NCBI GenBank assembly: GCA_907165135.1
Contig: OU015568.1
Location: forward strand, 15,697,208 to 15,761,207
Length of the DNA: 64,000 nt
Direction: 5' to 3'
Source: Oikopleura dioica
Taxonomy: Eukaryota; Animalia; Chordata
Of the stretch, positions 16,594 to 50,400 are shown piece by piece. Made by a program: the position numbers and the translations under genes. Position 1 is the stretch's first letter; each line of letters starts with the position of its first letter. The notes beneath the pieces are model-generated. The model was not told the DNA's origin, made no database searches, and worked only from the letters and a program-made list of their open reading frames with translations.

Positions 16594-18428
16594 ATGAAAA
16601 AAGGCAACTTTCATCAATACATTTGGAACCGAAAAGACATCCAAAAAGTGGACATCTGGGCTCGGCAACCTGTGTAGAAAACCTGAGTCAGGGTCTATAG
16701 ATCTAAAATGAAAAGTCGCGTAGCGGCTTTTTTATAAACGAAGCCGCTTTGCTCAGAAATCAATTGCTAGTCAAGGAAGTTATATCTGCGAAGCCGCTTC
16801 GCGGCTACGTCTTTAAAAAAGCCGCTACGCGGCTTTTCATTTTAGATCTGTAGACCCTGACTCAGGTTTTCTACACAGGTTGCTAAGCCAAGGTGGACAT
16901 TGTTGGTGAACTCGCTCAACGAGGCTTTTTGCGCGAAATTGCGGAGAACATCTTTAGCTACTTGGAATTTTCGGATTTGTTGATTGTCGGGCAGGTATCG
17001 AAACAGTGGGCGGATATAAATATCTCAAGAAGAATGTGGAAGGAAGGGCTATTGAGAACGATATCAGTCGTAAGTGCTCTTGTTTTAATAAATATTACGA
17101 AAGTGAATATTCTCCTGCGCTTATAATTATCCAAAACTAAGGATGAAAAGTGGAGGAAGCAAGTGGAACGGTTGAAGATTTGCGACTATGACGAACTTCA
17201 ATCGAATAATCTCTTAGGTAACTAATAAAATAAATAGTGCTCCAGAAGAGTTATGCCATAGAAGAATCGTCATAATCATTAGATTGCGAGAAAATTGGAA
17301 GAAGGATCAATGGATATTTTCGAAAGCAACGACAGAACTGGGGGCAACGCCCTCAAAGCGTTCAGGATGAGTTGTCCCATATTAATAATATGATATTATC
17401 TCCTTTGAAGAAAAGAACCCTCGAAAGTTGATGTTTTGAACTCTTGATGTGCCTGAAAATAACTCTGGAGAAAGACAGTAAATTTAGGAAAAGGGAACAC
17501 CATCAAACCACTTGGAATCGACGCTTCTGATGATTATATTGCGGTTATTGTCGATAGATTTCATGTAGGAAGCGCTTGAAAAGACTGAAAATCGGTATTA
17601 TCTTCTTAATTTTGTAAGCGTAAAGCAGTTATTCTCATTTTCGCCCGTTCTGACGGCCAATTCATCTGCAGATTGACCGATTGCCCGGGCGTTAAATTCG
17701 TTCAAGTTCATAAATCAACTTGTGTCGCTTCCAATTCTTCCGGAAAAACGATTTTCATTTGGCTCGGTTTGAAATTTCACTTGCAGATAGTGATAAGCCA
17801 AAAATTTAAAACCGATGGTAAGAACTTGCCGAGTGGACTGTTACTCAATCAAATCCGAGTTCACGAGCCGATAATGAGTTTGTCCTGCTTTTGGGACATG
17901 GAAAAGATGTTTGTTGGGACGATTTCGTCGCTTATTTCTTATGAGATCAGAAATGATGGCGAATATTTCGATGAAAACTGTCTTTTGGAACTCGGAAAAG
18001 GAATCACGAAAATAACTGCAAATGATAAATCGCTGTTTTACGGGACTTTTGACGGTTATCTTGGAATGCTGGACGTTAGAACGTTGGCAAAGAAGGCTGG
18101 TTTCACGAAGAAAGGATACAAGATCTCTTCCTTGATTTCAAACGATGGTTTTCTCGTCGCACAATTTGAAACTGGGCTGGAGATGGACAAATACATCTAT
18201 ATTTGGAAGATCGATGACACTTCTGATCGTCCATTTATATCGCCACTTGCGATTATTCCGAACTCAAAAAGTGAGCCGACTTTTTCGAATGGGGGAGCAG
18301 TCGTTTTCAATGGAGACGAAATCTGTGTCGGCGGACAGAATTTAGTTACTATTTATGAATGGATTGAATTCCCTTTACCAGCCCTAACCCTAACGCTAAC
18401 GCTAACCCTAATCAACCCTACCCCTTAG
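16594..18428 (+). CDS. F-box protein with divergent WD40-like C-terminus (beta-TrCP-like F-box); multi-exon; 3' end uncertain
   Basis: VDIVGELAQRGFLREIAENIFSYLEFSDLLIVGQVSKQW resembles the beta-TrCP F-box. Beta-rich repeats follow (LFYGTFDGYLGMLD, IYIWKID). ATG at 16594 is in frame once 16648-16892 is removed. Confidence 0.7.
16656..16892. mobile_element. Foldback MITE of the CTG...CAG family, 237 bp, inserted in F-box coding sequence and forming an intron
   Basis: Inverted arms of about 90 bp (CTGGGCTCGGCAACCTGTGTAGAAAACCTGAGTCAGGGTCT...). 8-bp TSD GTGGACAT at 16648-16655 and 16893-16900. Confidence 0.92.
18383..18427 (+). repeat. Degenerate telomere-like (CCCTAA/CGCTAA) tract
   Basis: CCCTAACCCTAACGCTAACGCTAACCCTAATCAACCCTACCCC. 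Shorter tracts occur near 29867-29879 and 62157-62182. Confidence 0.7.
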
Positions 18429-19083
18429 CATTATTACTATATCGAAACTATCAAAATCCAATGAAAGTCAATCGAAAAGCTTCAAAGAGCAAAGGAACTG
18501 AAACTGTCAGCTGAAATGACAGTCATTAATCGCCTGAAAGTTCAGGGCGTATCAAATTCTCTTTATTCCAACAAGAATCTGCTCATAAGGAAAAGTTCCT
18601 CATCGTAACTTTAACATCTTTTATGATCTAAAAGTAACTTTTCACAAGCGCCTGTGGTCCTCTTAATGGATTCTCCTTCACGATCTTCTCATTCAGCGAA
18701 GAATTTCAATACAATAAGTACCATTATGAGCTGATAAGATGAATCTGATATAATTCCTTTTTCTAATAATAAAGAAAAACTGATGATGATTGTTTTGAAC
18801 AGAGAATTATTAACCGTCGTAAAAACTCGCTGAGCACAAGTAGATGTCAGAATAAAAGGTCATTCTGAGGAAAAAAAAATAAACTCGACAGAGAGTAAGG
18901 ACTCACGCTTTGAAGCCAAGAGAAGACATGTGCCACCAGATACAGAAAAAGAGAACTTTGCAGGATGTTTTGCACTTTTACAGCGTGCAGCTTCTTATCA
19001 TTTCAATTTTTCAAATTATGAACGGGTCTAATTCAAATTTGCTAATTTTTTTCTTGCTAAAAGCTTTTCGATTCCTTGAAAGA

Positions 19084-19894
19084 ATGGACGCCCTGGCAAC
19101 TTGGTACTGGACACTTACCTTCGGAACAGGCTGCTTTATCGGAATTTTCGGAGTAGCAACTGGATCCATGGGCATTTCATATTCAAAAGTTTCCGATAGT
19201 ACTAATTTCAAGATACTTCTCAAACGAGTTGCGATTATGGCGTACGTAACAATGTCGTTATCATTTGGGGTGTATTTTTGGTTAATTGTTATGACAGGAA
19301 TGCTTACTTCCTTGAAGTGGAATAATGATTTTACCGTTTATCCCGTTTTTCTTGTCGGAGAAGCTATCTGCTTTATGATTCAGTGGTCGTTTTTATACTA
19401 TCTTGCGAATGTGACGGGATCGCCCTGTAATTGTATGGCGGAAGGTTCGTGCTGCTACACGGATCCAGTTCTTGACGCCGCATCGGAAGAACCACTTGTT
19501 GCTTCGAACCCTCAAGGCTGCAATACAATGCCTGTTGTGCACACTTACTTACCTGCACAAACCCAGCCAACAGGTTCGCAACATGTCTCGCTCTTATATT
19601 AACTCAATACTCTAGCAATTGTCTATCAACAGCCTCCGCAGGGTACAACCTATCAAAGCCAAGTATGTTTTATTCGATTTATTATAAATAACGATTTATA
19701 AGAATTTCAATGGATATTCCGTCCACACGGTTCCTCAACAACTACCCGTAGTCCCACAGGAATGGTTTTGATTTTGATCTCTATGGATAAAAAGCTAGAA
19801 ATTCAAAACCTCGATAAAGGCACCGCCACGGGACTCTCTGAGCCCGCCACCTTATGCAGAGTCAAGAAAATTCAGCGTTGAGGCAGATGAATGA
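19084..19894 (+). CDS. Small multi-pass membrane protein with a Cys-rich segment and a Pro/Gln-rich tail
   Basis: Three hydrophobic segments in ORF 18910-19602 from MDALATWYW. Downstream exons appear to encode IVYQQPPQ and PPPY. Confidence 0.55.
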
Positions 19895-19959
19895 GACTTT
19901 TTCCTGCTTTGACTGTATCAAAATAAATCCATACATTAGATTGGGTCATTTTATTTTGC

Positions 19960-20554
19960 AGGGTTTTTATTTGTTCACTTTCGGAGCGCCTTGATCCGTG
20001 ATGCCCTTTACTTGAACAGTGCTAAAGTCGTTTTTTAGTTTGTATCGTAAAGAGATAACTTACTCGGTCAGCCCAGCCATCTGAATAGCTTCAAATGCGA
20101 AGACACAGAAGTCAAACCACCAGAAGCAGTTCGCGGAAACATGAGGAGCACTGTTTTTGGCGACAGTTATCTTTTCATATTTAACAATTTTAAAGGTTTT
20201 CTGCTGTTAAATTTGTCTTGAAAACCAACCCAACAAGATGCAAAGACGAAGTGGTAGAGGAGTCCCCACATGAACATATCTTTTAGGGATATTATTCGTA
20301 ATTTTTTCGAAAAATCCTCCGAAGAAAAAATACGCAGAAAGTACCCTATGTATTTATCCCTGACAAAGGTAGATTGCCCACCCCAAGAACAACATTTACA
20401 GAACCCAAGAATAATCGAAAATATCCACCAAATTAGACTATCAATAGTTGAAATAAATTAATGAAAATGATCTAGTACCTGATGCAGCAGGTCGCAAAAG
20501 CAAATGGCCATTGCCAACCATGCTTATGAAAACATCCATGGTTGTGGTTGTCAT
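19960..20554 (-). CDS. Possible small multi-exon membrane protein
   Basis: Hydrophobic short exons (MFMWGLLYHFVFASCW) with GT/AG borders. The structure is not resolved. Confidence 0.3.
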
Positions 20555-20936
20555 CGCAAACGGCTACTAGGCAGCATATAAATGCGACAAATTCTAGCAC
20601 AATATGGATGACTTTGATAATGAGTTGCTATTTATAAGTTTTTTTCCGGGAATCGTTCATTTTATTCACTTGGTTTCTGAGTTGATTGTCTCTCTTAAAA
20701 CTTTCCTTGCAGCTCTGCCGTTCTGCCATCTTCCTATATCTCTCCTATCGCTGTTTTGCATCGATTCTTAGAAAGCGGGGCTTATACCAGATGCCCGTTG
20801 AAAGCATTTATTTTCGTAGCTAAGATGGAAACTATGGCCGGAAATGTCATGTTATCAAAGTCGTAATTTCTGCCCTGGTTACTTGGTTACTTTTTTTTAT
20901 TAAACAGTTAGGGAACAATTTTCACGAGCATTGAAC

Positions 20937-23900
20937 TTATGAGAAATTATAATCTTTCATTGTCCCATCAGCCGAGAGAGCCGTCTTTTTTGAGGTTTAT
21001 TTTAATGAATGATAAAATAAAACAAAACTAAATTGAAATATCCTGGTTTCTATAAACCCGTTCCTCAGCTGCTTTTGGTTTGAGCGTAGTAGCAGACTGC
21101 ATTTCCGGCGGAGCGTTCTTGTGAGTCTTAAACACTACAAGCAGCACCACTAGAAGAAGTACAAATCCACAGAGTCCAATGACAATCCACCATTTTGCTT
21201 CTGCTGTTGTCAAAGCGTTGGTCAGGATGAGCTTCACTGATTTTGGTTCAACGATTTCGTCGCTGTCAAGGATCGGACTCGATATGATCATCTTATTGTT
21301 TTTCGTTATTTTGGTTGATGTTGTTTATTATTTACCTCGGATGTTATGGTGCTATTTTCTCGACACTCGGGAGTGTTCAGCTTCTTCATAAGATTGAAAT
21401 TGACTTCAACTTCGCTCAAGAGAGAAGGCAGAAGATCTTGTTCAGACTCAACTCTGATCGTCAACTTGCCATTTTCGCTTTCACAGGTTGGTTTTCGCAT
21501 TGTGAGGGTTCCAGAAACGACTCCATTTTCTTGTTTGCAAGGATTTTCGAAAATATAAGCTTCTGTTATTGTTGTGACGACGGCCAAGTTTCCGGCTTTG
21601 ACGGGACTGACGCCTGAAATCAAGGAAGAAACACTGATGCTGATGATTTCGGCTCCAGTTTCGTTATCATCTTTAAAATGATCGTTTACGATTTTTCGAT
21701 TTCAAAACCACTTACTGTCGACATTACACAACGAGCTATCAGGTGAGACGCTCAATCTCGCAGTATTCTTATCCAGCAATTTTTCTTGAACAACTGTAAT
21801 CGAAGAAGAGCACTCAGTGCCGCCGCAGTTTCTGATTTCTTGACATTTTCCGCAAGAAAAGAGCTTGGCTGAGTATCCAAGTTCTTTGCTTGTTCCATCT
21901 GCTTTGACGTCAAATGCGAAATTTGCTCTTTGGCGATCGCCCTCGTTCATCGCGAATCCAAGAGACTTGAAAATGCACTTGCGACCGAAGTAAGTGTTTC
22001 CACAGGAAGAATCATTTGGGCAAGCATCAACGTACCAGTCGTTATCGGAGGTCATGTCGAAGCTCAATTGCCTTGGCAGAAATTAATGATTGAGAATCAA
22101 ACAAAAACTACTCACCCTTCCTCGAACTCCATCATCAGAGAAGGTCGCATCAAAAGAGCATCATCCAATCTCACCGTCAATTGCCCATTCAACCGTTCAG
22201 CTGGTACATTGATACTCTTCACCGTCGTCTCTGTCTTGTCCATTTCGACATCGAGGTTGATTTTCGGCGTCTGAAAAAAATCAGAAACGTACGAAAAAAT
22301 AACTTACATTTGAGCCATCGCCTTCAATTTCCACAAAGTGTCTTGGAAGCCGACTCTTGCAGCCAAAAGTGTAGCCGAACATTTCTTGTTGATTTTTGAT
22401 GTTCAACTTAGCTTCGAAAACTGCTAGTTCAAAAGGACCTGTGTTGCAATCTTGAAGAACTTTGCTGATTTCAACCGAGATTTCTTCACAGAATTCTGAT
22501 GATCTTCTTGTTTTTATCTCGATTTTCTGCATAATGACATCTCCAACGAGTCTTGGGTCCAGCTGGATTGCGACTTCGACCGTAACAGAGTTCGGTGCCT
22601 CGACGGGTTTGTCAGTCAAACGCACACAGATTTCAGCTCGAAGTTGATTTGCTTCCCGATCAAGGACGGATTGATCGCCCCAGTAAAGCTCAAGCTTAAA
22701 CATCGGTTTCAAGTTGAATAAGTAAATCATATCAGATTCTCCAGCCGTGACAAAGAGTTGGTTATCTTCGCCAGTTTTGTATTTCATCTTCGATCCGAGA
22801 GCTTTGAAGTCCCCAGTTGGGGAGTATCCAGAGACTTCGCCAATATCAGTTTTGTCCAAAAGGCAAAAATCTTCAGCGGAGGCCTCATTAGCTGCTTTCA
22901 TCGTAAATTTGCCTCCGTAGATGAGATAGAGTTTGCCAAGTGAGTTGTTTTCATTGGCTGCATAGGGGGAGGAAATGACTACATCGTTGAATCCGTCACC
23001 GTCTTGGTCACCGACGTGTTCTATCGCAGATCCAAATCTTCCTTCTTGATCAACGCCGAGGAGAATTTTCGGATCGATGTCATCTAGCTTGCCATCTCGC
23101 TGGATATAGATAAAGATTCTGCCGATATCGTACTTTCGCTTCTCCGAGTAATGAGGAGCTCCGACAATCAGGTCATCAAGTCCATCGTTGTTGATATCAA
23201 TGACTTGAATCGCGAATCCAAATGACTCGTGAGAGAAAGTTCCGCAGACTCTTGTTCGTCTTGATTCGAGAGCTTCACTCGATTGTTGATAACTTTTGGG
23301 CATCTCTCCTCCCCATTCGTATTCTTGCTGCAATTTCAGAAAGTTGACGCATCCAGTTCTCTTGTGCTGGTCATTCAAACCACGATCTTCGACTTCTAGC
23401 AAGAAATCTTCGCCGCCAATATTGATCGAACCAACGTTTGAGCCCCTTCGTCCTCCAGCTTCTTTTCGTTTGATGAAGTCTGGTGTCATCGACTCGCTGG
23501 AATATTCTGGCTTTGAAAAGCTCAAGAACTTTTTCTTGGTGATGGATTTTTCGATTTGCTGCATTCCAGCGACCATCAGGAGAGCTTTGCTTGGGAACTC
23601 ACGGGTGTTGAATGCGAAGGTGTTTCCTTGATTGTGATTTTTCGGTGCTCCGACGAAGACGTTACTGTCGAATTCATTGATAGATGTTCCAAAGTGACAG
23701 CTCATGCTCATCATACCCTGGTCATAGTTTCGACCGTAGCGACCGTATTCTTGTGTGCCGTTTTTCCAGTAGATAGTCGGTAAACTATGACCGCCCGTGG
23801 GCAAGAGTGGGGTCAAATAAGTGAAACAAGGGGAGATCCAGTTGATGGCGGTGGAATCGATGTTTCCATTTTTAAGCCCGTCAATTTGGTCCTTGATGTT

Positions 23901-24455
23901 CTTGACATAATAACAAGACCCAATCGGGAAGTCGTGTCGTTCAACAGAGCTCTGCATGTCTTCAGTTTTCTTGAGAGTTCTGCATCTCGTCTCGCCTTCT
24001 TCCAAATCTTCATGATCGCGACGATCACACATCGCAGCCGCGGTAGCTCTAGGATCGCAAAACCAGAGAGCGCCAGAATCATCGACTTTAATTGTGGCGC
24101 CGAGAAATTTATTGTGTACCAAGAGGTTTTCCTCCCTTATTCCTCGAAAGATATTATTCATCAGCGTCCCCTGATCCGCCTCAAAGAGCAGCGGGCTTTC
24201 GTGGCAAGTCTCGCTTGTGCATTGTCTGTCGATTTCGTAACTGTAAACGCGACCTGTGTAGCCCGGCTGTACGTTGAATTTTGGAGCTCCAACGACTAAA
24301 TTGACCACTTCTTCGCCATTTTTCCTCTGAGTGAAAAAGTCGAAGCTCGCTCCGAACTTTGACCCTTCCTGGCTATTCGTCAGAGTCAGCTTTTCTGAAA
24401 ACACGGAAGACTCCAACCCAAGCACTGCGGAAAGTGCGAATATCATCGACCGCAT
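20937..24455 (-). CDS. Integrin alpha subunit (no I-domain seen); first exon about 2.1 kb; last exon tentative
   Basis: Signal peptide; FG-GAP repeats (FGASF..LVVGAP; FGFAIQVIDINNDGLDDLIVGAPHY; FGSAIEHVGDQDGDGFNDVVISSPY); single TM WWIVIGLCGFVLLLVVLLVVF. Confidence 0.9.
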
Positions 24456-24713
24456 TTTCCGCGAAGAAAATCAAAAATCTCTTTCGTTTTTTCTCTATGC
24501 GCCTGTCAAATTTAATTTTTTGGTCAGTGCAAGCCATACATTTGTTAAATATTTGCCTTTCACTATTCATCGGCTCGAGTGTGTGCCTAGGGTCTTTACA
24601 TTTCAGCGCGCGGTTTTCATAAACTTCAGAAGATTGCTTTATGTGGCAATATGAAAAGTAACCAGAAAAAATAATTCAAGGAGATTGCTATTTATTTGTA
24701 AGATTGAAGTCTT

Positions 24714-27256
24714 TTATCTTCCATGTTCATTATCGAAAGGATTATCGAATGTGCAAGTTTCCACAGTCATAAGCTGCCTGATTGAATTCATCCTCCGAAA
24801 TTTCGACTGCGTTTCGTGGCAAATTGCCGGTCCTTTCGTATTGAGCGTTTGCGGCATCGACGAATACTTTTTCGTTACTGATCAATTCTAAGGTAAGTTG
24901 GTAAAATAACTTTCAGCCATTCCACAACTCACCAACTTGATCTTCAATCCTGTCATTCACAAATTTCATGAAGCGTGTTCCATTCTTGAAAAAAAAAATC
25001 ATCAAGTGTCAAAAATGATTACAACTTTTGACGAAGAACGCCGTATTTTGAGCTCAATTGATGTTTGCCTGATCACTTCCAGATCAGCCGAGGTATCATG
25101 AAGTCGATGAAGCTCATTTTCAGAAATCGATCCATATTTTCTCTAAACAACTGTTACATCAAACACCATTTTTTACTCTACTTCTGGTGTGAAATCCATC
25201 TTGAAGTATCTATCGTTAATTGATATTTGCCGCCGAAACATGGGTTTTGGCGGAATTTTGGGCCTCCCTTGAATTGCATCACTTAGATCTCGTTGAAACT
25301 TGTCCAGTACTCCAGGCTCAAAGTTGTTCTTAATTCTTTCTTGAAGCCCCTAAATGTTAATCAGTATTTGAGCGTCAAATAACATGCTTGTCTTACTGCG
25401 AGATTGCGGTTAAGCTCGACTTCTTGCTCCGTAAGCATTCGATTTTTTTCGCCAAGGCTTCTTTGAGTACTGTTCCAATCATCGAATTTCTTTGTCAGGA
25501 GAGTTGTTCGTCTCATACGCTTTGAGCCAGCTCATTTTAAGGATTATTCTTATTCTAATCCTTTTAAAAAGCGTTCCTAATAATATTGTTCGCGACTTCG
25601 CGTCTTTCATGAATTGTCTGAAAATTGTGAAAAAAAATAAAGTTCTGCTTCTTTACCTGAGAATCGGATAATCGAAGATCGTCCGGCAACTGTCTTCCTA
25701 ATTCTGTGCTAGAATACAGGGATTTCTCCAAGTCAGCAACTTCAGCTTGCATAATGGAAATCAATCGCTTCGAGTAGTTGACTTCATTTTCCAGCTGTCT
25801 TCTGAGCTCTTGTTTCTCTCGGGTGAATTGATTCCCTTGTTCGTGATGGGCGTCGTAGGATTCTTTGAACTGACGTCTTTGGTTTTCCATTTCTTTATTA
25901 AAAAAGTAAAATGACGAGCTAAATACTAACCCTACCTCTTAATTTTTTTGGCAAATCGTCATGATTTGCTTTTGGCGTTCCAAAACAAATATCGTATTTT
26001 TCGTACGAAGACAACAAATTTGGAGATGAACCTATTCGCTGGGGCAGATCATGTTGTTCATGCTTAGTTTGCTCAGGAAGTGTACTCATGTGTCGAAGAG
26101 GAGGTTTTGACGGAAACTTGGAGGGTGTGGAATCGTAGCCGGGTTCCATTTTGTTTTTCAGTTTGTCGTAGATTGGCTTGACTCTGATATTTGTATTTTT
26201 CATTGATCAATTTGGCAGAAAAGAAACAACAGTACTTTATAATGAGAAACAAGCCTTGGATGCTCAAGAATCTGAGATGCAGTCGGTCGTTTCTTTCTCA
26301 ATTCGAAGCATCCCTTGATGATCTGATCAGCATCAACGCTGCCTTCTACCGGTTTGTATTCTAGCGCCTCGATTCGTTGCCCCATTTCTAATTCTACATT
26401 TTTCTTTTTCTTGACTTCATCGGTCAAAAATGGATGCTCGAGCATGATCAACTCGTAGAGAATGACTCCAGCTGCCCAGATGTCAGAATCACGACCAAAT
26501 TTAGCCTCTCCACCAGCGAAAAATTCGTAATGAACGTATGCGAGAGTACCACTTGCTATTTTTAAGGATATTAAAAGAAAGATGCATCAGAAGAAAAGAA
26601 ACAACTAAAACATATCCTGTTACAGTAGAAGTAACATCATCACCCAAGGTCTTGTTAAGTCCAAAATCTCCGAGCTTGCAAATGTTTTTATCCTTTTTGA
26701 AAAATATGTTTTCCGGCTTGATGTCGCGATGAATGATGTTCTTGCCGTGAATGTATTCTAAGGCCATGTTGATCTGAGTAAACCAGCCCCACAATTGATC
26801 ATCATGGAGTTTGACATCTAAATGGTTTCTCATTAGTGGCACAAAGAGAGTATCTTACTGTTCTCTTTTGCTGCATCAATTGTTTTTCTTAGATCTCCAC
26901 CTCCGCAGTACTCCATCACGATACGAAACTCTTTGATAGAATTCCCCATGAAAGAGTTGCATTCAAGCTCGTCCAAGTATCTCACGATATACGGATGGTT
27001 GAGGCTCTCTAGTACTTCAGCTTCTTTTTTCGCATTTTTGATTTCTCTCTCTCGTTCTTCTTTATCCTTACTCATTTTTATCTTTTTCACGACAACCTGT
27101 TGTCCATCTTATTTCAAAATATTATTAATAAAAAAACGTCAATAATTGACCTGTTAATCGCTTTGCCAGAACTACTTCACCAAATGCTCCTTTCCCCAGT
27201 GTCTGTATCTTCTTATACTTATGCCCATGCTCTTTGAAGAAATTTGCATCGAACAT
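24714..27256 (-). CDS. NEK/NIMA-like Ser/Thr kinase with a coiled-coil C-terminus; 3' end approximate
   Basis: [64 protein letters not shown]. Confidence 0.85.
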
Positions 27257-27851
27257 CGCAATTCAAAAACGGCTCAAAAATCTCCTTTAATTTTTTGGAG
27301 AATGGAATGGTCGACTTCAAATTATGCCAATATTTGCAATCTTGGCAAGAATCATGCGTTATTCCGTTAAAATTTAACACGATAACTTCTTCTTCTTCTT
27401 ATGAAACATTCGCAAATAGGACTAAGGCTCATCAAAGTGCCAAATACGCCTGCAATTCCTGCAAGAAAAAAACGAAAGTTCAATGTGAATATCTTTTTAT
27501 TGATGTATTCAAACAACAAGTGGCAGGTTTATGTTTGTAAATTGTAAAATAAGTGAAATTCTATTCATTCCTAATTTGATGATGTCGCCGATTCGGGCAC
27601 ACCTTGAAAGCTCATACGTCTCATTCTCAGATAATGGCCGAGTCCCCGCACAAAATTCGTCGAAATCGGGAACTCGTTGAATATATCCGTGTATATAAGT
27701 TTTTTATAAGGGAGTTAAATGCTTTTTATATCTTGCTTTTCATAATATGAACATGGATCTTTGAACGTCTGGAAAATATAACGAACTGGAAGAAAAGAAA
27801 ACATCATTTTTTCGGACACTTTTTTCAACGCGCATTTTGATCTTTTTGTGC

Positions 27852-30351
<2,500 letters not shown>

Positions 30352-31039
30352 TCTGGAGACCATCGATTAAATCGTATTCTCGTAATTTTCGCGTTTTCTT
30401 TTTCCGTTCATGCGTTATTATCAAAAAGTTAAAATAACAATTTCCCCAAAAATAGCGGTTCTAGAGCTTTCTTTTCGAGCCGAAAAAAGGCGCCCGAAAA
30501 AGGGGAATTCTCTTTTCCGCGGCGAGAGTGGATCGATCGTCCGTTTTTCAAAGATTTTGAGAAAAAAAAAGCGCGGGCGATTTTTAACCGATCAGCGCGC
30601 GGCGCGGGCGAGCGAGATTTAACCCATTGGCGCAGGGAGAACGAGTGGGCAACACTGGCGTACGAGTTGAATTGAGGCCGCGAACGAACCAAGTTGCGAA
30701 AATTTAACTCTTCAGGAATGGGCGTAATTGAGAATGATTAATCGGTTAGTCACTTGATTACTCACTGATATCAGTGAATGAAAAATTCAAAAAGGGAATG
30801 ATAAGGGGCTTCTACTTAAGGGTAGAACCTAAGATATTGAAACAAAGCTAACCTGATTTCGATTTCATGTTTAAAAATTCAATCAATAAGTTGACAAATT
30901 TTCTCTATTGTGAAATATGGTAGAACATTCTATTCGTACTTTCGCTTAGTATATCTAGAAAAATACTAAATTAGTAAAATTAAATTTTATTTGTCAAAAT
31001 ACTCAATTTATCAAGTGAAAATCTCTTAGTAACAAAATT

Positions 31040-31270
31040 TATCCATGTCATCCAGTGTAGAAAACCTGAGTTAGGATCTGAGAGTTTTTAATGAAAAGCC
31101 GCATAGCGGCTTTTTTTAAAAACGAAACCGCAAAGCAGATTTGCCAGAGTTAGAAATAATTTCGCAAAGCCGCTTTGCCGCTTCGTTATTTATAAAAGCC
31201 GTTACGCGGCTTTTTATTAGAGATATTTCAGACCCTGACTCAGTTTTTCTACACAGGTTCCTAAGAACAA
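31040..31270. mobile_element. Long, more decayed copy of the CTG...CAG MITE family between KAT8 and EPG5
   Basis: GTGTAGAAAACCTGAGTTAGG...CCCTGACTCAGTTTTTCTACACAGGTT. It shares the internal AAAAGCCGC..AGCGGCTTTT palindromes of the 16656 copy. Confidence 0.8.
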
Positions 31271-31598
31271 TCTCTTTCGGTAAGAGTCTAACCTTGATGA
31301 TAAGCTGCGAATAAATTCTTCAGTGGTGGTGATAAAATTCATAGTCGGATAAAGTTCAGATTGGATTCTTCTGAAAAAATCGTGAATTTCGGAAGGTTTC
31401 GCGAATTGGAATTGAAAAGTGGCGCTTTGCCAAATTGGCGCTCTCAACAAATGAGGATCGCGCGCTGAGTCTTGAGACTGTTTCTCAGAAGAATCACGAG
31501 ATGGCTCCGAGGAAAAAATCAAAACCAAAACAATGAGGACAGAAATTTATTGAAGAAAACGTAAAATTAATTTAAATAATTTAAAAGAAAAAAAGAAG

Positions 31599-38605: not shown

Positions 38606-38750
38606 GGCCTTGAAAAAAAAAACTCGATAATTTTTCCCCTTTTCTATCTTTCTTTCTGTTCAAAATATTCTGTCAAGACTGAAAAATTCAGGATAATATC
38701 TTCAAAAACCGTTCCGTTCAACAAAAAAAAAGAAAATAAATAAATTTCAA

Positions 38751-41298
38751 ATGTTCAGAACACGCGTGTTTGAAAATTTGAAAATGCTTCGATTTCGTGT
38801 TTTTAGCAAGTTTCCAGTAGCAAAAAGGTTCCATGCAGATTTGGTCAGGAATATCGCAGTTATTGCTCATATTGACGCAGGAAAGACTACTACCACTGAA
38901 GCGTTGTTGCATAACTCTGGCAAAAAGGCGGTGAAAGGATCTGTAGGAGAGGGTCAGAATATTCTCTGAACACTCGTCTTTTCGTACATTTTTTGACCGT
39001 TCCAAAGATGATGGGACGACAACGACAGACTATCTTGTTCAAGAGCGCGAACGAGGAGTTACCATTCAATCTTCAGTAGTGTCGTTTACGAATACAAATA
39101 AAGAAACCGGCCAGATTACAAAATACAATATCTTTGATACACCTGGTCACGCTGATTTCATTTTTGAAGTCGAGCGAGTTCTCCCGGTAATCGACAGGTT
39201 TGGGCAAACCACTCAACGTCTTCTCATGTTTCTAGCGCTCTGCTCATCTTAGACTCTTGTCGTGGCGTAGAAACACAAACAAAAGCAGTTCTCCGACTAG
39301 CCAGAAAGCACAACATTCCAATAATGGTCTTCGCCAACAAAATTGACAAATTCAACTCCAATCCATCATTTTCAATCGAGTCGCTTGAAAAATTCGGGAT
39401 GAATCCGATCCCGCTTCAAAAAGTAGACGAAGACAAAATGATCCAAGATGATCTTGAATCTGATGATGTTGTCGAACGCGTTTCAAATTATGACGACTCG
39501 ATTTGTGAAAAATATTTGAATGGAGAAAGTGTCAGTAAAAAAGAAATTCTAGCGGCGATCAGGGAAGCTCATGGACGATGCGAAGCAACACCAGGAGAGG
39601 CTTTTTATTAGCGATTACGTTTTTGATGGCATTATTATTTTGCAAGCCTGAAAAAGTTCTATTCGGGTCATCGAAAAATAATGTTGGCCTGGCAAAGCTG
39701 ATCGAATATCTGACCCTCTTCGACCATCGAGAAGAAAAACAAGACTTTACTGGCTCTTCTTTTGTGTTCAAAATCACTAATGACCGCAGACTTGGCGAAA
39801 TTGCCATGCTGCGAAATTTCGGCCCATCTCCGTTATCATTGAAATCAACGAAGACTCTTCAAAACTTGTCGAATGAAAACATGCCGATTTCTACAAAGAA
39901 AACTAAGATATTTTCTGTTGATGGAGCAGCTTTCGAACCCGCTCAAGAAATTCAACAAGACGACGTTCTTGTTCTATCGAACTTCCAGAACCTGAAAACT
40001 GGGGATTTCATCAGCAACAAGAAGGCAAAGACATCAGAGAGCAAGTTTGACAACTTTCTGAAAGCCCGGCAAGCATCTTGTTCCGTTGTGCTAGAAGTCG
40101 AAAAACAAGGAAAAGAACAACAACTGCTGGCCGGATTGGAAGTTCTGTGCAAGGAAGATCCAAGTTTGAGCTTTTTGGAAAACGAAGAAACGGGAGAAAT
40201 AATTCTGAGAGGAATGGGCCCTTTTCATCTGGAAATCGCGATTTCGAGGCTGGAAACAGAACATAGGCTTGGTTCTCAAAAAAGATTTCTTGATTCTCGA
40301 TTGAGTCGGAAAAAGCACCATAAGATTGTTTATTTCACCGATTTTCAAATGAGCACCATAATTTTTAACCGGAGCGGTGCTGCCGGTCATGATTTTTGAT
40401 CGACAGTCTTTACGATAAAAACTTCAGTCACCAAATGAAGTAAATTTCTGTAGGGCAAACCTATTCCCGCTGAGCGCTTACAGCGCTCAGTTGGTTCTGC
40501 CCCATTTTCATGAATTTCCGACTATCGGCATATTAAACCGACCGGTTCTTCCTTTACTGAGAACCAGTTGAAAGAATCAAGGACATTTATCAATACCCCG
40601 TTCGCGTGGATTATCGCGAAGTTCCGCAATCGTCAGTCTTACACGAAACCATCATCACTGAAAATCATCTCGGGCGGGATTCAAGCGTCAGATTTGAGCT
40701 CGAGCTTGAGCCGCAAGAAAATATTACCGAGTTTACGACAAAGAATATAATTTTCGGAAGCAATGCGGTTGGCCAAAATGTTGATGGGCAAAGTTCGAAT
40801 GTTGAAAATTTCGCGAAAGAATTCAAGGTCAGGAAATTGATTGAAGAGGGAGTTATGATGGCGACGATGGCTGGTCCCGTCGAGAAAAATCCTGTCATTG
40901 GTTTCGATTTGCGGATCAAACGCATCGAAGCTCAGGGATGCTTCTTCAAGCAAATGAAGGGATTCATTGTTCAAAAAATGATCATCAGAGCTATTCAAGA
41001 AGCGCTTCGAAAAGCTAATTGTGTCGTCAAAGAACCGAGAATGAAATTCCAGCTTTCTCTTTACAGGTTTTCAGCATCTAATTCAAGCGTTTATATATTT
41101 TCAAGCGTGGAATTCCGCGGAAAAGTGATGGAACTTCTCGCTGAAAATGAATGCGAAGTTTTATCAGAAGAGCCCGAAGGTGAAATGTGGAACATCTCTG
41201 GACTCTTGAACGTCTCGCAAGAATTGAAAATCCAACAGAGACTCCTTTCGCTTACGAGAGGGAACGCTTATCTTGAAACTTCATATTTTGGCTTATAA
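38751..41298 (+). CDS. GFM2: Mitochondrial ribosome-releasing factor 2 (EF-G2mt)
   Basis: N-terminal transit-like peptide; [18 protein letters not shown]; [21 protein letters not shown]; [14 protein letters not shown]; NKID; EDPS; GMGPFHLEI. Confidence 0.88.
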
Positions 41299-41341
41299 AA
41301 AATAAACCAAATAAAATTAATGTGAGTATTTTTTCTTTAGT

Positions 41342-43052
41342 ATGTGCGGAATCGGAGTGTTTGTTAACTGTGAGCCAGATGATCGAACAATCAAAGCATT
41401 GAAAAACCGAGGGCCAGATTTTTATCACCAGGAGACCTTCAACGTTGTAGGACAGTCAGTAACAGTCGTTGCTACTGTTTTGTCTCACCAAGGAGAAGGA
41501 ATAATTTCGCAGCCCATTGTCACCGACGACTTTATTTTCCTTTGGAACGGCGAAGTTTACGATCATCCTCGCTATCAACCGCAAGAAGGTGGCGATACCA
41601 ACTGGTTCTTTGATAATGTCGGTTCGCAAATCACCGGCGAAAATGCGACAGGAATTGAAATCATGAAAGAAATCAGAGGAGAGTTTGCATTTTGCACAAT
41701 CAACCGAAAAACTGGAGAAATTTCTTTTGGACGAGATCGACTCGGTCGCCGATCATTGCTTCTTTATTCCTTTGAAAATAAATTTATTCTGGCTTCATCT
41801 TCGTCTGGCTATCACTTCATAGAACTACCCGCTGATGGTCTCTACAGTTTTAACTTGAAAATGATGGACAAACTCAAGAGACATCCATTCGCAGCGAATA
41901 CAAAAGTTGATGGGCACATGCTCGACGAGTTTTTATTCTCGAATTTGAACGAAAACATGTTAGCAATAGAAGGAATCAAAGATGGGAAACTACACTCGCT
42001 TCCAGTCGAGAATGTTCAAGGCTCACTTACTTCCGATTTATGGAACTTCGAGCAGAATTTTGACGGGTCTTGCACTAACGACTGGTTGCCAGAGCTTGAA
42101 ATAGTCTTCAAAAAAGCAGTTGAGCGCAGAGTAAAGCTAAGAAAAGGATCAGTAGGAGTTCTATTCTCTGGTGGACTTGATTGCTCTCTTGTGGTAGCGC
42201 AGGTGCTGGAAATTTTCGAAGGACAGCGGGAGTTAGCGACTACGGTTTATCTCTACTCTGTTGCGTTTGGAGACAACGAGGAAAAATGCGAAAAGTGTCC
42301 AGATAGAATAACCGCCGTAGCAGCATTTCAAGAAATCACAGAAGCTCATCCAACAGCGGATTTGATCCTCGTCAAAGAAAATATTTCAAAACAGGAGCTT
42401 CAGAAAACCAGAGATGAGAGAATAAAACATCTGATATCTCCTCGAATTTCCGTTCTTGATGATTCTATCGGCAGTGCGCTTTACTTTGCTGCTCACTCCG
42501 AAGTTGGCAGTGATTGTAGATTGCTTCTTTCTGGCCTCGGTGCGGATGAATTGTTTTGTGGGTATTCTTGTCATAGACGCGTTCACGATCGTGAAGGACT
42601 TGATGCTTTAGGCTTTTGGTCTACCTTTGATTTTGACAATTTTCAAGGGAACTTTTGGAGACCAAATTTCAAGGGCTAGAAGTTCAAACGCACATTGAAA
42701 GAATCGCCGAAAGAAATTGCGGTCGAGACGATCGAGTGATTTCAGATAGCGGGCGAGAATACAGAATGCCTTTTCTCGATTTGGATTTGATCAGTTTCTC
42801 CTCGTCAATTCCAATTCCAGCGAGATGCGATCTGACAAAGCCAAGGGGAGAAGGTGAAAAGATGCTCTTGAGACAACTTGCTTACAAAAAGGGATTAAAA
42901 GTACTGTTTTCTTTCACTAGAAATAGGGTTAAAACATCTGCTAGACAATTTCTTCGTTCGAGAAGCGCGCGATCCAGTTTGGCTCAAGAATAGTGAAGAT
43001 GGAAGACAAGAAAGTGAAGGGAAACGATATCTGTGCAAACTTACAGAAATAG
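41342..43052 (+). CDS. ASNSD1: Asparagine synthetase domain-containing protein 1
   Basis: MCGI; NRGPD; LWNGEVY; RDRLGRRSL; LFSGGLDC; LSGLGADELFCGY; C-terminal KRAIQFGSR. Confidence 0.92.
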
Positions 43053-43203
43053 AAATTGCCCAATTTCAATTAAAAACCTTTTTAGTCTGTTAGTCTCCGT
43101 CGAGCTCAAGCCGCGCTCGTTCTAGCCGAAAATATGAAGCCCACTCAGTTGAGGCGAGAAAGAAGCCGCTTTTTATTTCATTTTGAGAAATTGGACGAAA
43201 AAG

Positions 43204-44247
43204 ATGTCTCTTCCAAACCGAGTTAGCAAGTACAGAGATTTCTTGCCAAAGTCGCCGGGGCATTCAGATAATTACTACGGCTCGGCGGTAATTAATAATG
43301 AAATTCATGAACTATTCTAACTTCCTTTCTAGCCGCTGTGGAGCCAGTCATCCTGCGAAAAATCTCAAGATACTCAGACCTGCCCACCTCGATTTTACAC
43401 GAGAAATCCGTCAATAGAGCGAAGGAATTATGGAAGTCAGGGTTTCTCCATTGGAGAAAGCTCACAACTTGCATCTGCTCCAAAGGTACTTTTTTGATAA
43501 TTTTTTTTTCTTTCAAACTGAAATTTTATTTTCAGGGCAGAAAAGTCAGCGAAGCTGGTCGACCAAGATCCTTGCCTAGTACCCAGGTAAAGTCTAGTTG
43601 AAAATGACCACAGCTAATCAGAATTCAAGCAACTTATAAATGGCAAGCTTGCTTTTACTGCATCACAATTTACTCCAAAGAAAGACGCTCCCAAGAAAAA
43701 AGACCTCCGTATCGACAGCTGGACACAGATGACACCAAAGTCCAGCAAGCCGAAAGCACAGGAGTCAAAGAAGACAGTGAAAGATGCAGCGACGGAGATG
43801 ACACCAAAGAAGAAAGAGGCCAGCGTTCCAACTAGGAAAGAGGGTGATGTTCCAGAGAAGATTAAAATCAAGGAAGAACCGTGGCCGACACCACCACCAC
43901 AGGCTTCTAGAGCGACTCAATGGACACCCAAGTCGGCCGGTTTGCAGCTGAATTCTCTCCAACGAACCCCTATCAGAAAGAAGAAAGTAAGCGAGTACTT
44001 CGAAGAAGCAAAGAAAAACTTCGGGGAAGAGGGAAGTAGCTTTTCGATGGATTTCAGCGAGTCGCCAGGAGGAACGTTCAGAGTTCACTTCGAAAAGAAA
44101 CAGAAAGGTAAATCAAAATCATCGTTGTTTTATTCTGATTTCGTCCCTTCTAGCGACGATCTTGGAAAGCGAAAAGAACGGGAAGATCAAGTCGATCATG
44201 AAGCGAAGCATCAAGAAAAAACGAGTCAGCTTCAATTCTCAAACTGA
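43204..44247 (+). CDS. Multi-exon basic protein with several (S/T)PxK CDK-type sites; function unknown
   Basis: ORF 43729-44247 and upstream exons contain FTPKK, MTPKS, MTPKK, WTPKS and RTPIRK. Confidence 0.5.
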
Positions 44248-44787
44248 GCTCATCTATTAATTCTACTGTTTTTTGATAAAAATTGTCATTTTTCAATAAA
44301 ATTTTAAATCATCAACTTTTAGAAAAGATCCCTAGATCGCGTCGTTTCTTTCGAATTTTGACCCCAGTTAACCTCTTGACCGCCTTTTCGCGTTCTGGAA
44401 AACTTTTTTCGCGTAGGTTTATTACGCAACAGTGCGCAAAATGCGCGTAATGCTGGAGGATTTCGAGCTGGGGACGATCTTTTCTTCAAAAAAACAAAAT
44501 CTGAGATCAAATTCAAATCGGTAAGAGCTCACTCAAATTCCCAGAGATCCAAGAAGATTTTTATGACGGTCGTGAGAGCGCTTTTTCGCGGGCGAACTTC
44601 TTCAAGCGCAGAGATGATAAAATTAAAAAAAAAAACTTTTTTCAAATTATCTTTCAGAACTTCCTTTATCACCCTTCGCCCAAGCCACTTTCATTTCTAC
44701 CGTTCTTTATCTACCTCCCTCAGCCCTCTTCGCTCACAGCATCATTCAGACTTGACTCAAGAATCCCACCTCTTTTCTTCGTCGAAA

Positions 44788-46504
44788 ATGTCCTCCCCAC
44801 CAGCAAAGCGAAAGAAATCCGCGAAGATAGAAGATGATGGAGACAAGATTGCTCTTTTCATTTTCCGCCGAGATTTGCGAATCGAAGACAATACGAGCTT
44901 GATCAAGGCGATCAAAGATGGATACAGGAAAGGATTCACAATCTGAGCTTAAAAATTTCTTTTTCAAAAGAGCCAATTTCAGAACCCTTTCAAAAGAATT
45001 CTCCCTGTCTTCATCTTCCCTCCCGAGCAAATCGATCCAGAGCAGAACGAGTACTTCTCTCATCCAGCAGTGCAGTTCATGTGCGAATCTCTCAACGATC
45101 TTGGGCGCAATTTGAAGGAGAAAGTGTCCGGAAAGCTTCATCTTTTCAAAGGCGGGAATCTCGAAACAATCAAGAAGATCAAGAAAGTCGTCAACTTCTC
45201 CGCTGTTGCTTTCAACGAGGACTACTCAGTTTATGCGAAAGAGAGAGATGGAGAGATTGAAAAGTGGGCGGAGAAAAACGACGTGGAAGTGATCAAAGAG
45301 GAGGATTACGGACTGTTGCCGATCAAAGATGCATGGCATCATCCTAAAGATGGCCCGCCAAAGCCATACCGAGTTCTTTCCATCTTTTTCAAGGTAAAAC
45401 TCAAATTTCCAATGCATTTTCATTAGATATTTCTAGCACATTCAAAAGAACTACGATATCCGAATGCCAGAGTCTGAATTTGAATTCGAAGCATCTCAAT
45501 TCACCAAAGCCAAGTTTGACTTCAAATTCCCCATCGACAAGTTGAACACGCTTTACAAAGCCAACGAAGATTTGGCCGAACGAGGAGGAAGAACAATCGG
45601 CCTAGTTGGGCTACAGAAAATCGAGAAGAAGGCGGACTACAAGACGACTCGGGATTTCATGCACCTCAAGGCTGGGACGACGAAAATGTCCGCTCACTTG
45701 AAATTCGGAACAGTGTCTATTCGAGAGATGTACTGGCGAGTGGCAGAGTGCTTTGGCGAAACGCATGATATCATTCGACAGTTGGTGTTTAGAGACTTCT
45801 ACTTGAAGATCTACTCACACAATCCCGCTCTTCAGCGAGGAACAGCCCTGCAGGATGGTTTGGATAAGCGACTCCCGTGGAATGATGATGAAAAGCTATG
45901 GAATGCCTGGTGCGAGGGAAAGACTGGCTTTCCCCTTGTTGACGCAGCGATGCGGGAAATGAAGGCAATTGGCTGGCAGGTAAATCTAACTGAATCCAGC
46001 TCAAAATCTAACTCAATTTTCAGCACAATAGAATGCGAATGCTCACAGGATGCGTGTTGACCAAATACTTCATGATTGACTGGCGAAAGGGAATGAAGTT
46101 CTTCTACCAGAACCTCGTCGATGCGGATATTTTCAACAACACAGCCGGTTGGGGGTGGGTCTCGTCAACTGGCCCCGATGCCGTCCCCTACTTCCGCTAC
46201 CCCTTCAACCCTTGGACTCAGTCGAAGAAATTCGATGTGGTAGGAGTTAGATTTATCTACATCAAATAACTTTTATTAGGATGGAAAATACATCAAAAAG
46301 TACATTCCCGAGTTGGCCGATGTTTCTCCTGCAGATCTTCACAAATGGAACGACGCATCTATTCGAGCCAAGTACAAGAAAAACAAGAAGGTTCAGCAGT
46401 ACCCAGCGCCGGTTATTGATCATGAAGAAGCGTCGAAGAATGCTGTGGCTCAATACAAGAAGGCTTTTGAGGACTGGAAGGCGTCAGATGAATACAAGAA
46501 ATAG
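44788..46504 (+). CDS. DNA photolyase, microbial class I CPD-like; four introns, the first GA-AG (44928-44996)
   Basis: FIFRRDLRIEDN; TTKMSAHLKFGTVSIRE; RQLVFRDFY; WCEGKTGFPLVDAAMR; HNRMRM; LVDAD..NNTAGWGW; PFNPWTQSKKFD. Confidence 0.93.
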
Positions 46505-46630
46505 ATTTGCTCGAAAAAGATTCCATGAACTGCCGCAAGATTTTTTTGCACTGCCTCTGTTTCTTTGTTCAAGAATAAAATGAGAGATAACAGGAAATAC
46601 CAGATAGTAATTTGCTATTTTTATTTGCAG

Positions 46631-46966
46631 TCATTTACGAGCAAGGCAGCGATAGATAATACTCTCCATTTGTTGAATCAGTTTTTCTGTTGCCCTGTAG
46701 CGTCGTTTCAATCGAGAGAGGACCGTACCATCATTGTTGACTTCCTTGCCATTTCGGCGTCTAGTCCGCTTTCGCTTCTCTGATGCTTGGCTGCATATGA
46801 CTTGGATTCTTTGAGCAAGTGACCTCCTCAGTCGTTTCAGATCATCAAGTTCTTCGAGAAACTCGGGAAGTTTCTTCACATCTTTCTTTTCCGATTTCCA
46901 GTCGAGACGACATGGTTTTCCTTTCACTTTCGTTTTCACAAGTTTCACTTCATAAGCAACGTACAT
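46631..46966 (-). CDS. Short basic or coiled-coil ORF, probably the last exon of a small gene downstream of CPSF2
   Basis: 111-aa ORF ending convergent with the photolyase 3' end. Upstream exons are unresolved. Confidence 0.4.
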   Translation of the reverse strand: MYVAYEVKLVKTKVKGKPCRLDWKSEKKDVKKLPEFLEELDDLKRLRRSLAQRIQVICSQASEKRKRTRRRNGKEVNNDGTVLSRLKRRYRATEKLIQQMESIIYRCLARK

Positions 46967-47461
46967 TTCTTGTATTTTTGGAGAATGATATGAAGTTTTT
47001 TCAGGTCTCTATTTTATTATCGATATTCTCGAAAATAAAAAAAAAAATACGCTACTGTCCAAAATATCGAAGGTAGTAAAATAGCAAGATATCGATTTTT
47101 TCTCAATAAGATTATGCGTGGCGAATTTGGATATTTATCGGTCAAAAATTTTTGTTCTCCAGCGCCGTTATCAATTTGATTGATGCTCATCAAATGCTGA
47201 TGTAATCAGTTCACAGCTCTTGATCTCGAAGGCGCAGTTTTCAAGTTGAAATGAAACGCTGTCGGCAGAGATCAAGGCTTCAAATAGAAAGAATTAACTA
47301 AAGGAGTATCAGCAATTCTAACCAAAAGCCTTCCTTATTTCTTGATGCTTATAAAGACTCCGGTGGCTTTATCGATAATAAATTTATTTGTGATATTTAT
47401 CTGTGGCAGTGTGAAACTTTTTGAAAGAAAATTTCATGTAAATTGTTCTAATGCACTGTCT

Positions 47462-50400
47462 TCAAACAATCGCGTAGTTGGCGTAGACTTCCTTTCGGAC
47501 GATGAAGTATTCTTCGGAAAGAGCTCCTTCGACTTGAATCACACCATTCGCACTCTTTTTGATGCTCACTTTTTCGTTGCAAACCAAATTTCCTCCTGAA
47601 ATCCATTTTAAAAAGTAGCCAAGCTATGATTATCCAAGGATTATCCAAGGATAATCAAGCCTTACCGATAAACTCTGCCTGCATGCCCATTTCGATTAGT
47701 TTTGACTTGAGATCTGTAAGCTTTGTATCGTTTATGAAGATAGTGTCGTGTCCACTCGAGTAGGTATTTGAAACAGGCTACAAAACAGTTAAGAACTGAC
47801 GCTTTCTCTCTTTTCTATACCTGTAAAGTCGGAATATCATCGATTTCCAGCTTCCTCGGCTCATCCGACTCTTCCTGCAGCTCAAGTCGACCGCCAAAGT
47901 AGTCAACTCTTCCTCGAATCCTCGCGACTTCGATATCTTTGCTTCCAACACGAACAAAATTCAAGTTGCTCAAAAGAGAATCCTTCAGTTTCAGCTGGTA
48001 GATGAAGCTTTCCTTCGTCGCGTCGATTAATTCGTGATGCTAGAAAAGTGCCCATGACATTCTGATAAATAGAAGAAAGAACTTACCACTGGCATATGAA
48101 TTTTTATTCCCTGGACTCTTGATTTGATATCTTTGATGAGCTTGTCCTTGTACTTTTCTTTCGTGCGGATGAGGATCAATTCTTTGGGCTTGATAGTCGA
48201 CAGGATTTGAAGTTGAGATTCGCCGTCGACTCGTCCTTCGAAATCGATGAATTCGATGTTGCATCTTATTGAAACCTGAAGTTTATTATGAATTATCGGA
48301 TGATAAAGGTAAATGTTACCTGTTCTCGTGATTTGATACACTTGGTCGGCATTTTTTCCTCTTCCTCGGGGGTATCGGCTCTTTTCTTTTTCTTATGATT
48401 AGGATTGTGTCGCCCAAAAGTAACAGACTGTTCTCTTCCAGCTAAATCGTCATTTGAAGGATCACTTTCTGGAATAAGCTCGTGCGTTTTGTAGTCGTCT
48501 GGATTGATAATTTCGCCGTAATCGTCCCATTTAATTCGATTCTCGTTGAAAGGAAACATTGGGAACTTCTCCTTTCGCGCTTTTTTGAAGAAACCGCCTT
48601 CTTTCTTCTGCTGATGATGGGGCATCATGATGTCGTAAATTCGCTTTTTCTGAAATAATCCGTCAAGAAAGGCCTCAAAGAAGAAATTTTACCTTGACGA
48701 TCTTTTTCTTGGCAACAACGTTTTCATTTTCATTATCCGATTCGTCGCTCGACTCTTCCTGCAATCGCTTGATGAGTTTGGCGTGCTTTTCTTGGGGTGC
48801 GCGTCTTTTCTGGCATTTTGAGAAATGCGTCCTTTCTGGCATCGCGTTCTTTCTGGCAGTCGCGTCTTTTCTGGCACTGGAGTCTGATTCATTTTACTCT
48901 GATATTGAGTAGGGTCAACCAAATTTAATATGCTGATATTAATAGCATAAAATCTTTACCTTCAATAGCAACTTGCCACAGGCAAAACTTTTTTATTTGA
49001 TTTAAAAATTTTTATTATCAAAGAAAAAAGTGCTGATAACTTACATAACTTAAAAGATTTTCAGCATTACTTATGATGATCTCATAATTTTTCATTCGAT
49101 TCTAGTGCCAAGAAATTGGTCCTCTCAATCATATTCAAAACTACGGGTACTTCTTCTTGAAGATAATTTCAGAAGGAAATAACAGTTGATTAGATTTGGT
49201 AGACCCTACTTGATATCAGAATTCAATGAATCAGACTTCAGTGCCAGAAAAGACGCGACTGCCAGAAAGAACGCGATGCCAGAAAAGACGCATTTCTCAA
49301 AAATGCCAGAAAAAACGCGCACCCCTTTTCTTGCTCTCTTTGCTTCTCAAATTCTTCCAATTCCGGTCCAACCAGAGGCACCCGCTGCTTCATTTCCAGC
49401 GTAATCGAACTCATGCCTTCGTTTTCGATGATTTTTCGACAAAGAGAGCCTTTGACAGATTTGCTAGACATAATTATCGCGTTTTTCGGGTGACCAGCCA
49501 TCATCGTGAACAGTTCTCGCGAGAAACCAGTGTCCATGTCCATCGGCGTCGCAAGAACTACTTTTGGCTCTGGGATACGAGCAACTTCTTCGATGGACAT
49601 TCTCAATTTCAGCCGCGTAAGGTCGAAGACATTCTCTCTTTTGTGGGTAAACCTGGAGATGATTTTCTCGCTCATCCATTCGATCATTCCTTTCGCTGCT
49701 TCAATCATGCTCGGAGCTACGTTTGAGATCATGACCAGATTGACGCGGGAAAGGTTGAATCGCTCATCGTTCCAGAGTCCTTCCAAGAGAAGAGCCATTT
49801 CTAGCGCTCGGCCGGCGGTATCTGTCGTAATCAGGACGTTTCCGCCCTTGGTAGTGGTGTTTTGAATCCGTCGAACAAGGCGTTCTGTTCTTGTAGCTCG
49901 TCTTTCTTGCTGATAGCCGTAAGTCGAGCAGTCAGTAATCATCAGTGTCGGTTTGTCAAAAGCATCGAGCTGGATTCCGTTCAGATGCGTTTCTCTTTTG
50001 TGATTCGCGTCGACGCAGTAGACGAACTGTTCTTCCTCGTCCTTCACGATCTTCCAGCTGGTTCCGCCGATCATGTGGCCAGCTTGAACTGGAACAATTT
50101 GTAAGCCATAATCTTGCCCTCGTACAGCTTCCGTTTGATTGTGCTTGAGTTGAATTGCCCGGTCGAAAACGGCATCTACGTCGTCGAGGGTGAACATTTC
50201 AAAGTCCTCAACTGCGTTTCTCGCCAAAACCAAGTCGTAGAGAAACATTTGACCCATTTTACAGGTAGGCATCGTCATGTAAACCGGACAAGTGATTCCC
50301 AACTTGCCCAAGTAAGGGAGCATTCCACAGTGAAGAAGATCAGGATGAGAAATTAAAATTGCGTCGATTTGTCGCCCATGTCGCTTTAGTCCATCTTTAA

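Follow-up and report, generated by a model that had tools for sequence, protein, structure and literature searches.

Two families of inverted-repeat elements in exons of Oikopleura dioica and their possible removal as introns

Two miniature inverted-repeat transposable elements (MITEs) of different families interrupt coding exons in a 64,000-nt stretch of the PAR chromosome of Oikopleura dioica (Okinawa, assembly OKI2018_I69; the whole stretch is called the window here), one in an F-box gene and the other in a gene which, from its motifs, we take to be CPSF2/CPSF100. They raise the question of whether such insertions become introns and, if so, whether a dedicated system is at work. An interpretation made from the letters of the window alone (the sequence-only reading) had proposed such a system, in which MITE ends combine with a donor requirement limited to an initial G and so link MITE activity, non-canonical donors and rapid intron turnover. 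We searched the genome (64,281,565 bases in 19 contigs) and drew a sample of 90 loci from it for the comparison of copies. Host genes were identified with Pfam profiles and local scripts, and spliced gene models were searched one exon at a time. The explanation that we favour, with a probability of roughly 0.55, is that splicing has no bearing on where these MITEs insert and that a spliceable minority persists as introns, aided by a spliceosome that tolerates non-GT donors.

The two exonic insertions

The element in the F-box gene belongs to family 1 and is flanked by a perfect 8-bp target-site duplication (TSD), GTGGACAT; it lies 18 codons past the ATG and shortly ahead of the F-box-like match (Table 1). 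The reading frame runs into stops if the element is retained and is reopened by taking out the element and one TSD as GT…AG, which would make the donor a canonical GT. A second solution, with a GC donor borne by the element and a gain of 12 nt, also gives an open frame in this copy. The family consensus ends CTG…CAG, as the sequence-only reading had stated, but the window copy itself ends AAG. The 3′ terminal inverted repeat (TIR; window 16855–16892) resembles a textbook 3′ splice region, with a CTGAC branch-point-like motif, a TTTTCT tract and several AGs, which lie 27, 14, 5 and 0 nt from the end, the frame depending on the AG chosen.

The element in CPSF2 belongs to family 2, carries a perfect 9-bp TSD (CAAGAAAAG on the minus strand) and interrupts a long exon of a gene that has no close second Lactamase_B_6 match in the genome. 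Here too the frame contains stops when the element is left in and reopens when the element and one TSD are removed, in this case as AG|GG…AAAAG. This acceptor is plausible because the non-GT introns that we recognized elsewhere in the window likewise end in a purine-rich AAAG. The idea that CPSF2 could be rescued by GG-AG splicing alone was rejected, as acceptors in the 3′ TIR (+21, +48 and +69 nt) are in frame with a GT donor located two bases inside the element, and a further GG solution adds 6 nt. Family 2 starts with GGG in either orientation, which bears out the claim that it begins GG whichever way it is inserted. Both of the insertions from two families that had been pointed out are real, each being exactly removable (GT-AG and GG-AG, respectively). 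That they reflect a common event was overstated, since of the eight TIR elements in the window only two lie in coding exons and the other six are intronic or non-coding.

Copies elsewhere in the genome

Family 1 is an ordinary hAT-type MITE (short, non-coding, with TIRs and an 8-bp TSD) present in abundance, with 515 exact TIR ends across the genome. Family 2, with about 10–20 copies of which about eight full ones were compared, is a small Mutator-type MITE; its TIRs of about 150 bp start with G, and most full copies have a perfect 9-bp TSD. The 42 family-1 copies whose TSDs agree within 2 mismatches give the target profile nYnnnnRn, in agreement with the target preference of hAT elements. The first base of the family-1 TSD is G at 28%, and GT starts 56 of 515 TSDs (10.9% against a background of 4.4%); we rejected this GT excess as evidence of introns because it is a product of the target profile and is not exon-specific. 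The genome holds nine matches to the hAT dimerisation domain, none of them tied to the family-1 TIR (the flanks of the matches lay outside the comparison), while the matches to MULE transposases are weak, have long open frames and in no case fall at a family-2 site. Seven hAT dimerisation-domain matches that are nearly identical to one another and have open frames (G000:C1:636914-737685, C4:380299-393363, C5:13847453) are candidate active hAT transposases.

Among 37 well-bounded family-1 elements 15 are exonic and 6 uncertain (14 of 36 are exonic if the window copy is left out). The hosts include genes for a nicotinic-receptor-like protein, a potassium channel, a kinase, two sulfotransferases, a prefoldin, CLCA and BORCS6 and presumably, on weaker matches, FPGS-like and ODAD-like genes. 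The Pfam match is continuous across the junction in the nicotinic-receptor copy (L021), and empty orthologous alleles are uninterrupted at three loci (L026, L071 and L083). The automatic exon call applied to 0.34 of insertion sites, 0.43 of random window sites and 0.23 of flank sites, so that exonic copies are not clearly purged. For family 2 the window copy is the sole clearly exonic one of eight, with none among the seven others. The copy at L032, whose TSD ends in AG, was rejected as an exonic one because it sits in another repeat.

Spliceability was compared between exonic family-1 sense copies (n = 14, window copy excluded) and controls (n = 47). G-initial TSDs occur in 4/14 exonic copies and 13/47 controls, so that the enrichment expected under the sequence-only reading is missing, and exact spliceability is likewise not enriched (6/14 against 17/47, p = 0.44). 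Nor are the splice sites placed consistently relative to TIR and TSD in family 1, the solutions varying among copies. When copies are divided by age, aged copies being those with TIR or TSD decay or an internal deletion, an exact solution is available to 6/10 aged exonic copies but to 8/31 aged controls (p = 0.057) and to 0/4 young exonic copies. Further intron-compatible copies do exist, namely six exactly spliceable exonic ones, all aged and some with mutation patterns expected from selection on splicing. Three of the six can use a G-initial donor as had been predicted (L026, GC; L083, GT; L087, GA), but the other three (L062, L085 and L086) have their exact solution through an AG|G inside the TSD. 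A GT donor is available in three compatible copies, that in the window included.

Two mutation patterns are suggestive. Of the exonic copies, 3/3 with an AG|G inside their TSD have lost the A from the AG at the element's end, against 0/12 of the others (p = 0.002, post hoc), a pattern which, judged from the sequences, would be expected from selection against a competing acceptor. At L026, where the target in the empty allele of a near relative is G-initial, the 5′ TSD has kept its G and gained a would-be replacement, whereas the 3′ TSD has only a synonymous change; this asymmetry is predicted by exact GC-AG splicing, in which the 5′ TSD would be intronic and the 3′ TSD exonic.

Several other exonic copies have no exact splice solution. 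Those at L021:1502-1746 (nicotinic receptor), L076:1018-1517 (potassium channel), L071:1501-2267 (ODAD-like) and L002:1501-1752 (BORCS6) are young, near-perfect and likely polymorphic, and that at L073:1410-1517 is an aged 108-bp copy in an exon of a prefoldin (subunit 5-like) gene. In the exonic copy at L088:1501-1733 a G three bases into the 5′ TSD is missing from the 3′ TSD; with this extra G a GG donor would arise that pairs in frame with the terminal AG and adds one codon. A homologue search for this locus, made under a length limit, gave no match. Upstream of the BORCS6 exon lie two copies of a tRNA-like repeat resembling a short interspersed nuclear element (SINE-like; L002:2037-2591).

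Donor rule, proposed mechanism and alternatives

Non-GT donors in ordinary introns of the window were inferred from frame and Pfam continuity, which gave four introns (Table 1), and in 4/4 of these AG stands directly before the donor G. The claim that GA and GC donors occur in ordinary introns is best upheld by the photolyase gene, whose GA intron is the only one of the four to lack an in-frame GT alternative; the three introns of the EF-G2-like gene (GA, GA and GC) all have one. The photolyase gene (window 44788–46490) has four short introns, the non-GT donor being in the first. Conservation of an upstream AG and a downstream A has been described for GA donors of O. dioica (PMC7072748). Remnants of TIRs or TSDs were sought in all four introns and none was convincing. 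To judge by these junctions, the donor rule is probably closer to AG|G than to the ‘almost any G-initial dinucleotide’ of the sequence-only reading, and the F-box insertion would use a plain GT in any case. An AG|G-like rule would therefore favour the geometry of family 2 and AG|G sites within TSDs, while bare G-initial TSDs would be weak donors unless they supply GT.

The mechanism that we propose would run as follows. Both families would enter exons at roughly the rate expected by chance, family 1 choosing its targets by nYnnnnRn with no preference for splice sites. Exact removal could then arise by three routes: a TSD starting with G combined with a TIR ending in AG; an AG|G within the TSD, the duplication supplying both sites; or, for family 2, the meeting of the element's first G with a TSD whose last two bases are AG. 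The permissive U2 spliceosome of O. dioica, accepting GA, GC and GG donors mostly after AG, would enlarge the spliceable minority. Compatible copies would persist and adjust, by loss of the competing terminal AG and by internal deletions, and the remaining exonic copies would be young, probably heterozygous, and imprecisely spliced or null. In this scheme the anatomy of the elements, the reading frames, the positions in exons and the TSD statistics are observed, and splicing, the choice of sites, selection and zygosity are inferred. By rough extrapolation from the 515 ends and the sample proportions, family 1 would have given tens to about a hundred exact introns, set against tens of thousands of introns in all, which looks too small to account for intron turnover in Oikopleura. 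Thus MITEs probably make some introns, as the proposed link between MITE activity and turnover implies, but no dedicated system that explains the turnover emerges. The families behave like introners in some copies, yet we do not class family 1 as an introner family because its splice sites lack a consistent placement.

A number of points weigh against this explanation. Samples are small, exon calls were made partly by hand, and the age split, like the AG-loss test, was post hoc. No exact solution exists for four of the aged exonic copies. The argument from AG loss is weakened at L086, where the competing AG would itself have been in frame, and at L083 the situation is the reverse of that at L026 in that the 5′ rather than the 3′ TSD matches the outgroup; the public gene model at L083, moreover, begins downstream of the element and does not bridge it. 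The additional AGs in the family-1 3′ TIR are possible competing acceptors. Finally, the assembly derives from one individual with about 3.6% heterozygosity (its introns have a median length of 49 bp and are non-canonical in 11% of cases; PMC8008620), and this animal may carry each of the two window insertions on one allele only.

An alternative that takes up some of these points, and that we regard as unlikely, is that family 1 is a self-sufficient introner, tolerated in nearly any exon owing to an in-frame GC donor at base 5 of the element and the terminal AG. Splicing of this kind would add the TSD and 4 nt, that is four codons and never a stop, whatever the TSD. It would suit the lack of clear depletion of exonic insertions and the 8/14 exonic copies without an exact solution (the four aged ones included), the window copy has an open frame under the +12 solution, L083 is consistent with a retained 5′ TSD, and an Aureococcus family that adds 12 bp offers a precedent (PMC9860276, Fig. 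2F). The donor would, however, read GG|GCTCGG, without the upstream AG typical of non-GT donors, the terminal AG that it requires is gone in three exonic copies, and L026 fits the exact model. A broader version combines both modes in an ongoing chordate introner invasion, in which about 150 exonic hAT MITE copies would nearly all be spliced in frame, some exactly through G donors derived from the TSD and others through the donor inside the TIR. Taken as a whole this is improbable as well, if a shade less so; were it true, new introns and small peptide insertions would be segregating in the Okinawa population and intron birth could be traced allele by allele.

A little less likely than the self-sufficient introner is the possibility that most or all exonic copies, including the pair in the window, are unspliced heterozygous loss-of-function alleles in a highly polymorphic species, their spliceability being coincidental. 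Chance makes about one-third of all oriented copies exactly spliceable (the 17/47 above), and the heterozygosity and the L083 gene model, already mentioned, would fit. Against it, aged and decayed copies lie in conserved genes (FPGS-like, CLCA, prefoldin, sulfotransferases) with their flanking frames open, and the AG-loss pattern and the L026 asymmetry point to selection on splicing. Least likely is the strong form of the original proposal, in which MITE ends and a G-only donor rule commonly make introns and drive both turnover and non-canonical donors in O. dioica: in its favour, seven copies of family 1 and one of family 2 are compatible with exact removal, with GT, GC, GA and GG donors all represented, but G-initial TSDs are not enriched whereas a compatible TSD is the rule in real introner classes such as those of Polarella, the estimated yield is a small part of the introns present, and the non-GT introns of the window have AG|G donors and no element remnants.

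Known introners and other features of the window

The mechanism favoured here is already published for the introners of Polarella glacialis, and transposon-derived introns are already reported for Oikopleura. Among the Polarella introner-like elements compared (classes 6, 8, 10, 12, 14 and 3), an 8-nt TSD of the form GHN6 gives a GA, GT or GC donor in some classes, and in others an AGG in the TSD gives both sites, or the last G of the TSD and the first C of the element form the donor (bioRxiv 10.1101/2020.10.14.339549). Family 1 resembles them in its predicted G-initial 8-nt TSD donor and acceptor at the element end, in either orientation, and in the copies whose TSD would supply both sites through AG|G, and at L085 the donor likewise consists of the last G of the TSD and the first C of the element. 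It differs in that Polarella has thousands of such introns, compatible TSDs being the rule, whereas fewer than half of the exonic copies fit here and most copies are non-exonic. The introners of Micromonas and Aureococcus, as summarized in later papers, are MITEs with TIRs and a TSD that carry one splice site and co-opt the other from the TSD (Huff et al., 2016, via PMC11282704 and PMC9860276). The likeness extends to the +12-bp variant, but splicing was shown there and the donors are canonical GT or GC, whereas here splicing is predicted from sequence.

Closer to home, intron gain by transposon insertion was described in the same nominal species, where a permissive major spliceosome was proposed to favour gain and new introns have non-canonical ends three-fold more frequently (Denoeud et al., 2010, as reported in PMC4122922, PMC3296678 and PMC3443670). 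A second larvacean, Fritillaria borealis, is reported to have MITE-derived non-canonical introns with TIRs and TSDs at their ends, tolerance of the spliceosome being tied to transposon invasion (Henriet et al., 2019, via PMC11282704 and PMC13326754); by the same accounts more than 90% of its introns are non-GT/AG, with AG-AC or AG-AT ends and a duplicated U2AF, while the G…AG frame is kept here. Oikopleura is absent from the main texts of two introner surveys. Intron birth is seldom caught in animals, and a single MITE family with young incompatible insertions, aged compatible ones and public empty alleles makes the filter model directly testable, with regard both to the insertions that last and to the changes that their ends undergo; a specific signature that can be checked is the loss of the terminal AG in copies whose TSD contains AG|G.

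Table 1. Coordinates of the insertions, their host genes and other features of the window.
Feature	Position	Strand	Remarks
F-box gene, 5′ part	16594..17070	+	ATG at 16594; F-box-like match 16935-17045
5′ TSD of family-1 MITE, GTGGACAT	16648..16655	+	GT donor source in exact-splice model
Family-1 MITE, 237 bp, hAT-type	16656..16892	+	8-bp TSD; AAG end is candidate acceptor
3′ TSD of family-1 MITE	16893..16900	+	Exonic in exact-splice model
Short family-1 copy in ordinary GT-AG intron, MYST acetyltransferase gene	28025..28121		Intron not created by copy
Short family-1 copy in another GT-AG intron, same MYST acetyltransferase gene	29392..29500		
Decayed family-1 copy, non-coding	31028..31268		
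Inferred GA-AG intron, AG|GAGAG, EF-G2-like gene	38947..39007	+	GT alternative 6 nt downstream
Inferred GA-AG intron, AG|GAGAG, EF-G2-like gene	39595..39656	+	GT alternative adds 8 codons
Inferred GC-AG intron, AG|GC, EF-G2-like gene	40267..40574	+	GT alternatives present
Inferred GA-AG intron, AG|GAAAG, photolyase gene	44928..44996	+	Lacks an in-frame GT alternative and any TIR or TSD remnant
Second TSD of family-2 MITE	48786..48794	-	Terminal AG is acceptor in exact model
Family-2 MITE, 530 bp, Mutator-type	48795..49324	-	9-bp TSD and long TIRs; begins GGGTG; small family
First TSD of family-2 MITE, CAAGAAAAG	49325..49333	-	Exonic; provides AG ahead of GG donor
Host gene of family-2 MITE	49964..50512	-	Genome's top Lactamase_B_6 match, E 4e-44

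Three more TIR elements, unrelated to these, lie at window 3279–4132, 14030–14345 and 50857–51447, none of them within an evident coding exon. Just past the F-box gene, at window 18380–18430, there is a short telomere-like CCCTAA(C) run, and similar runs stand beside L003 and L029.

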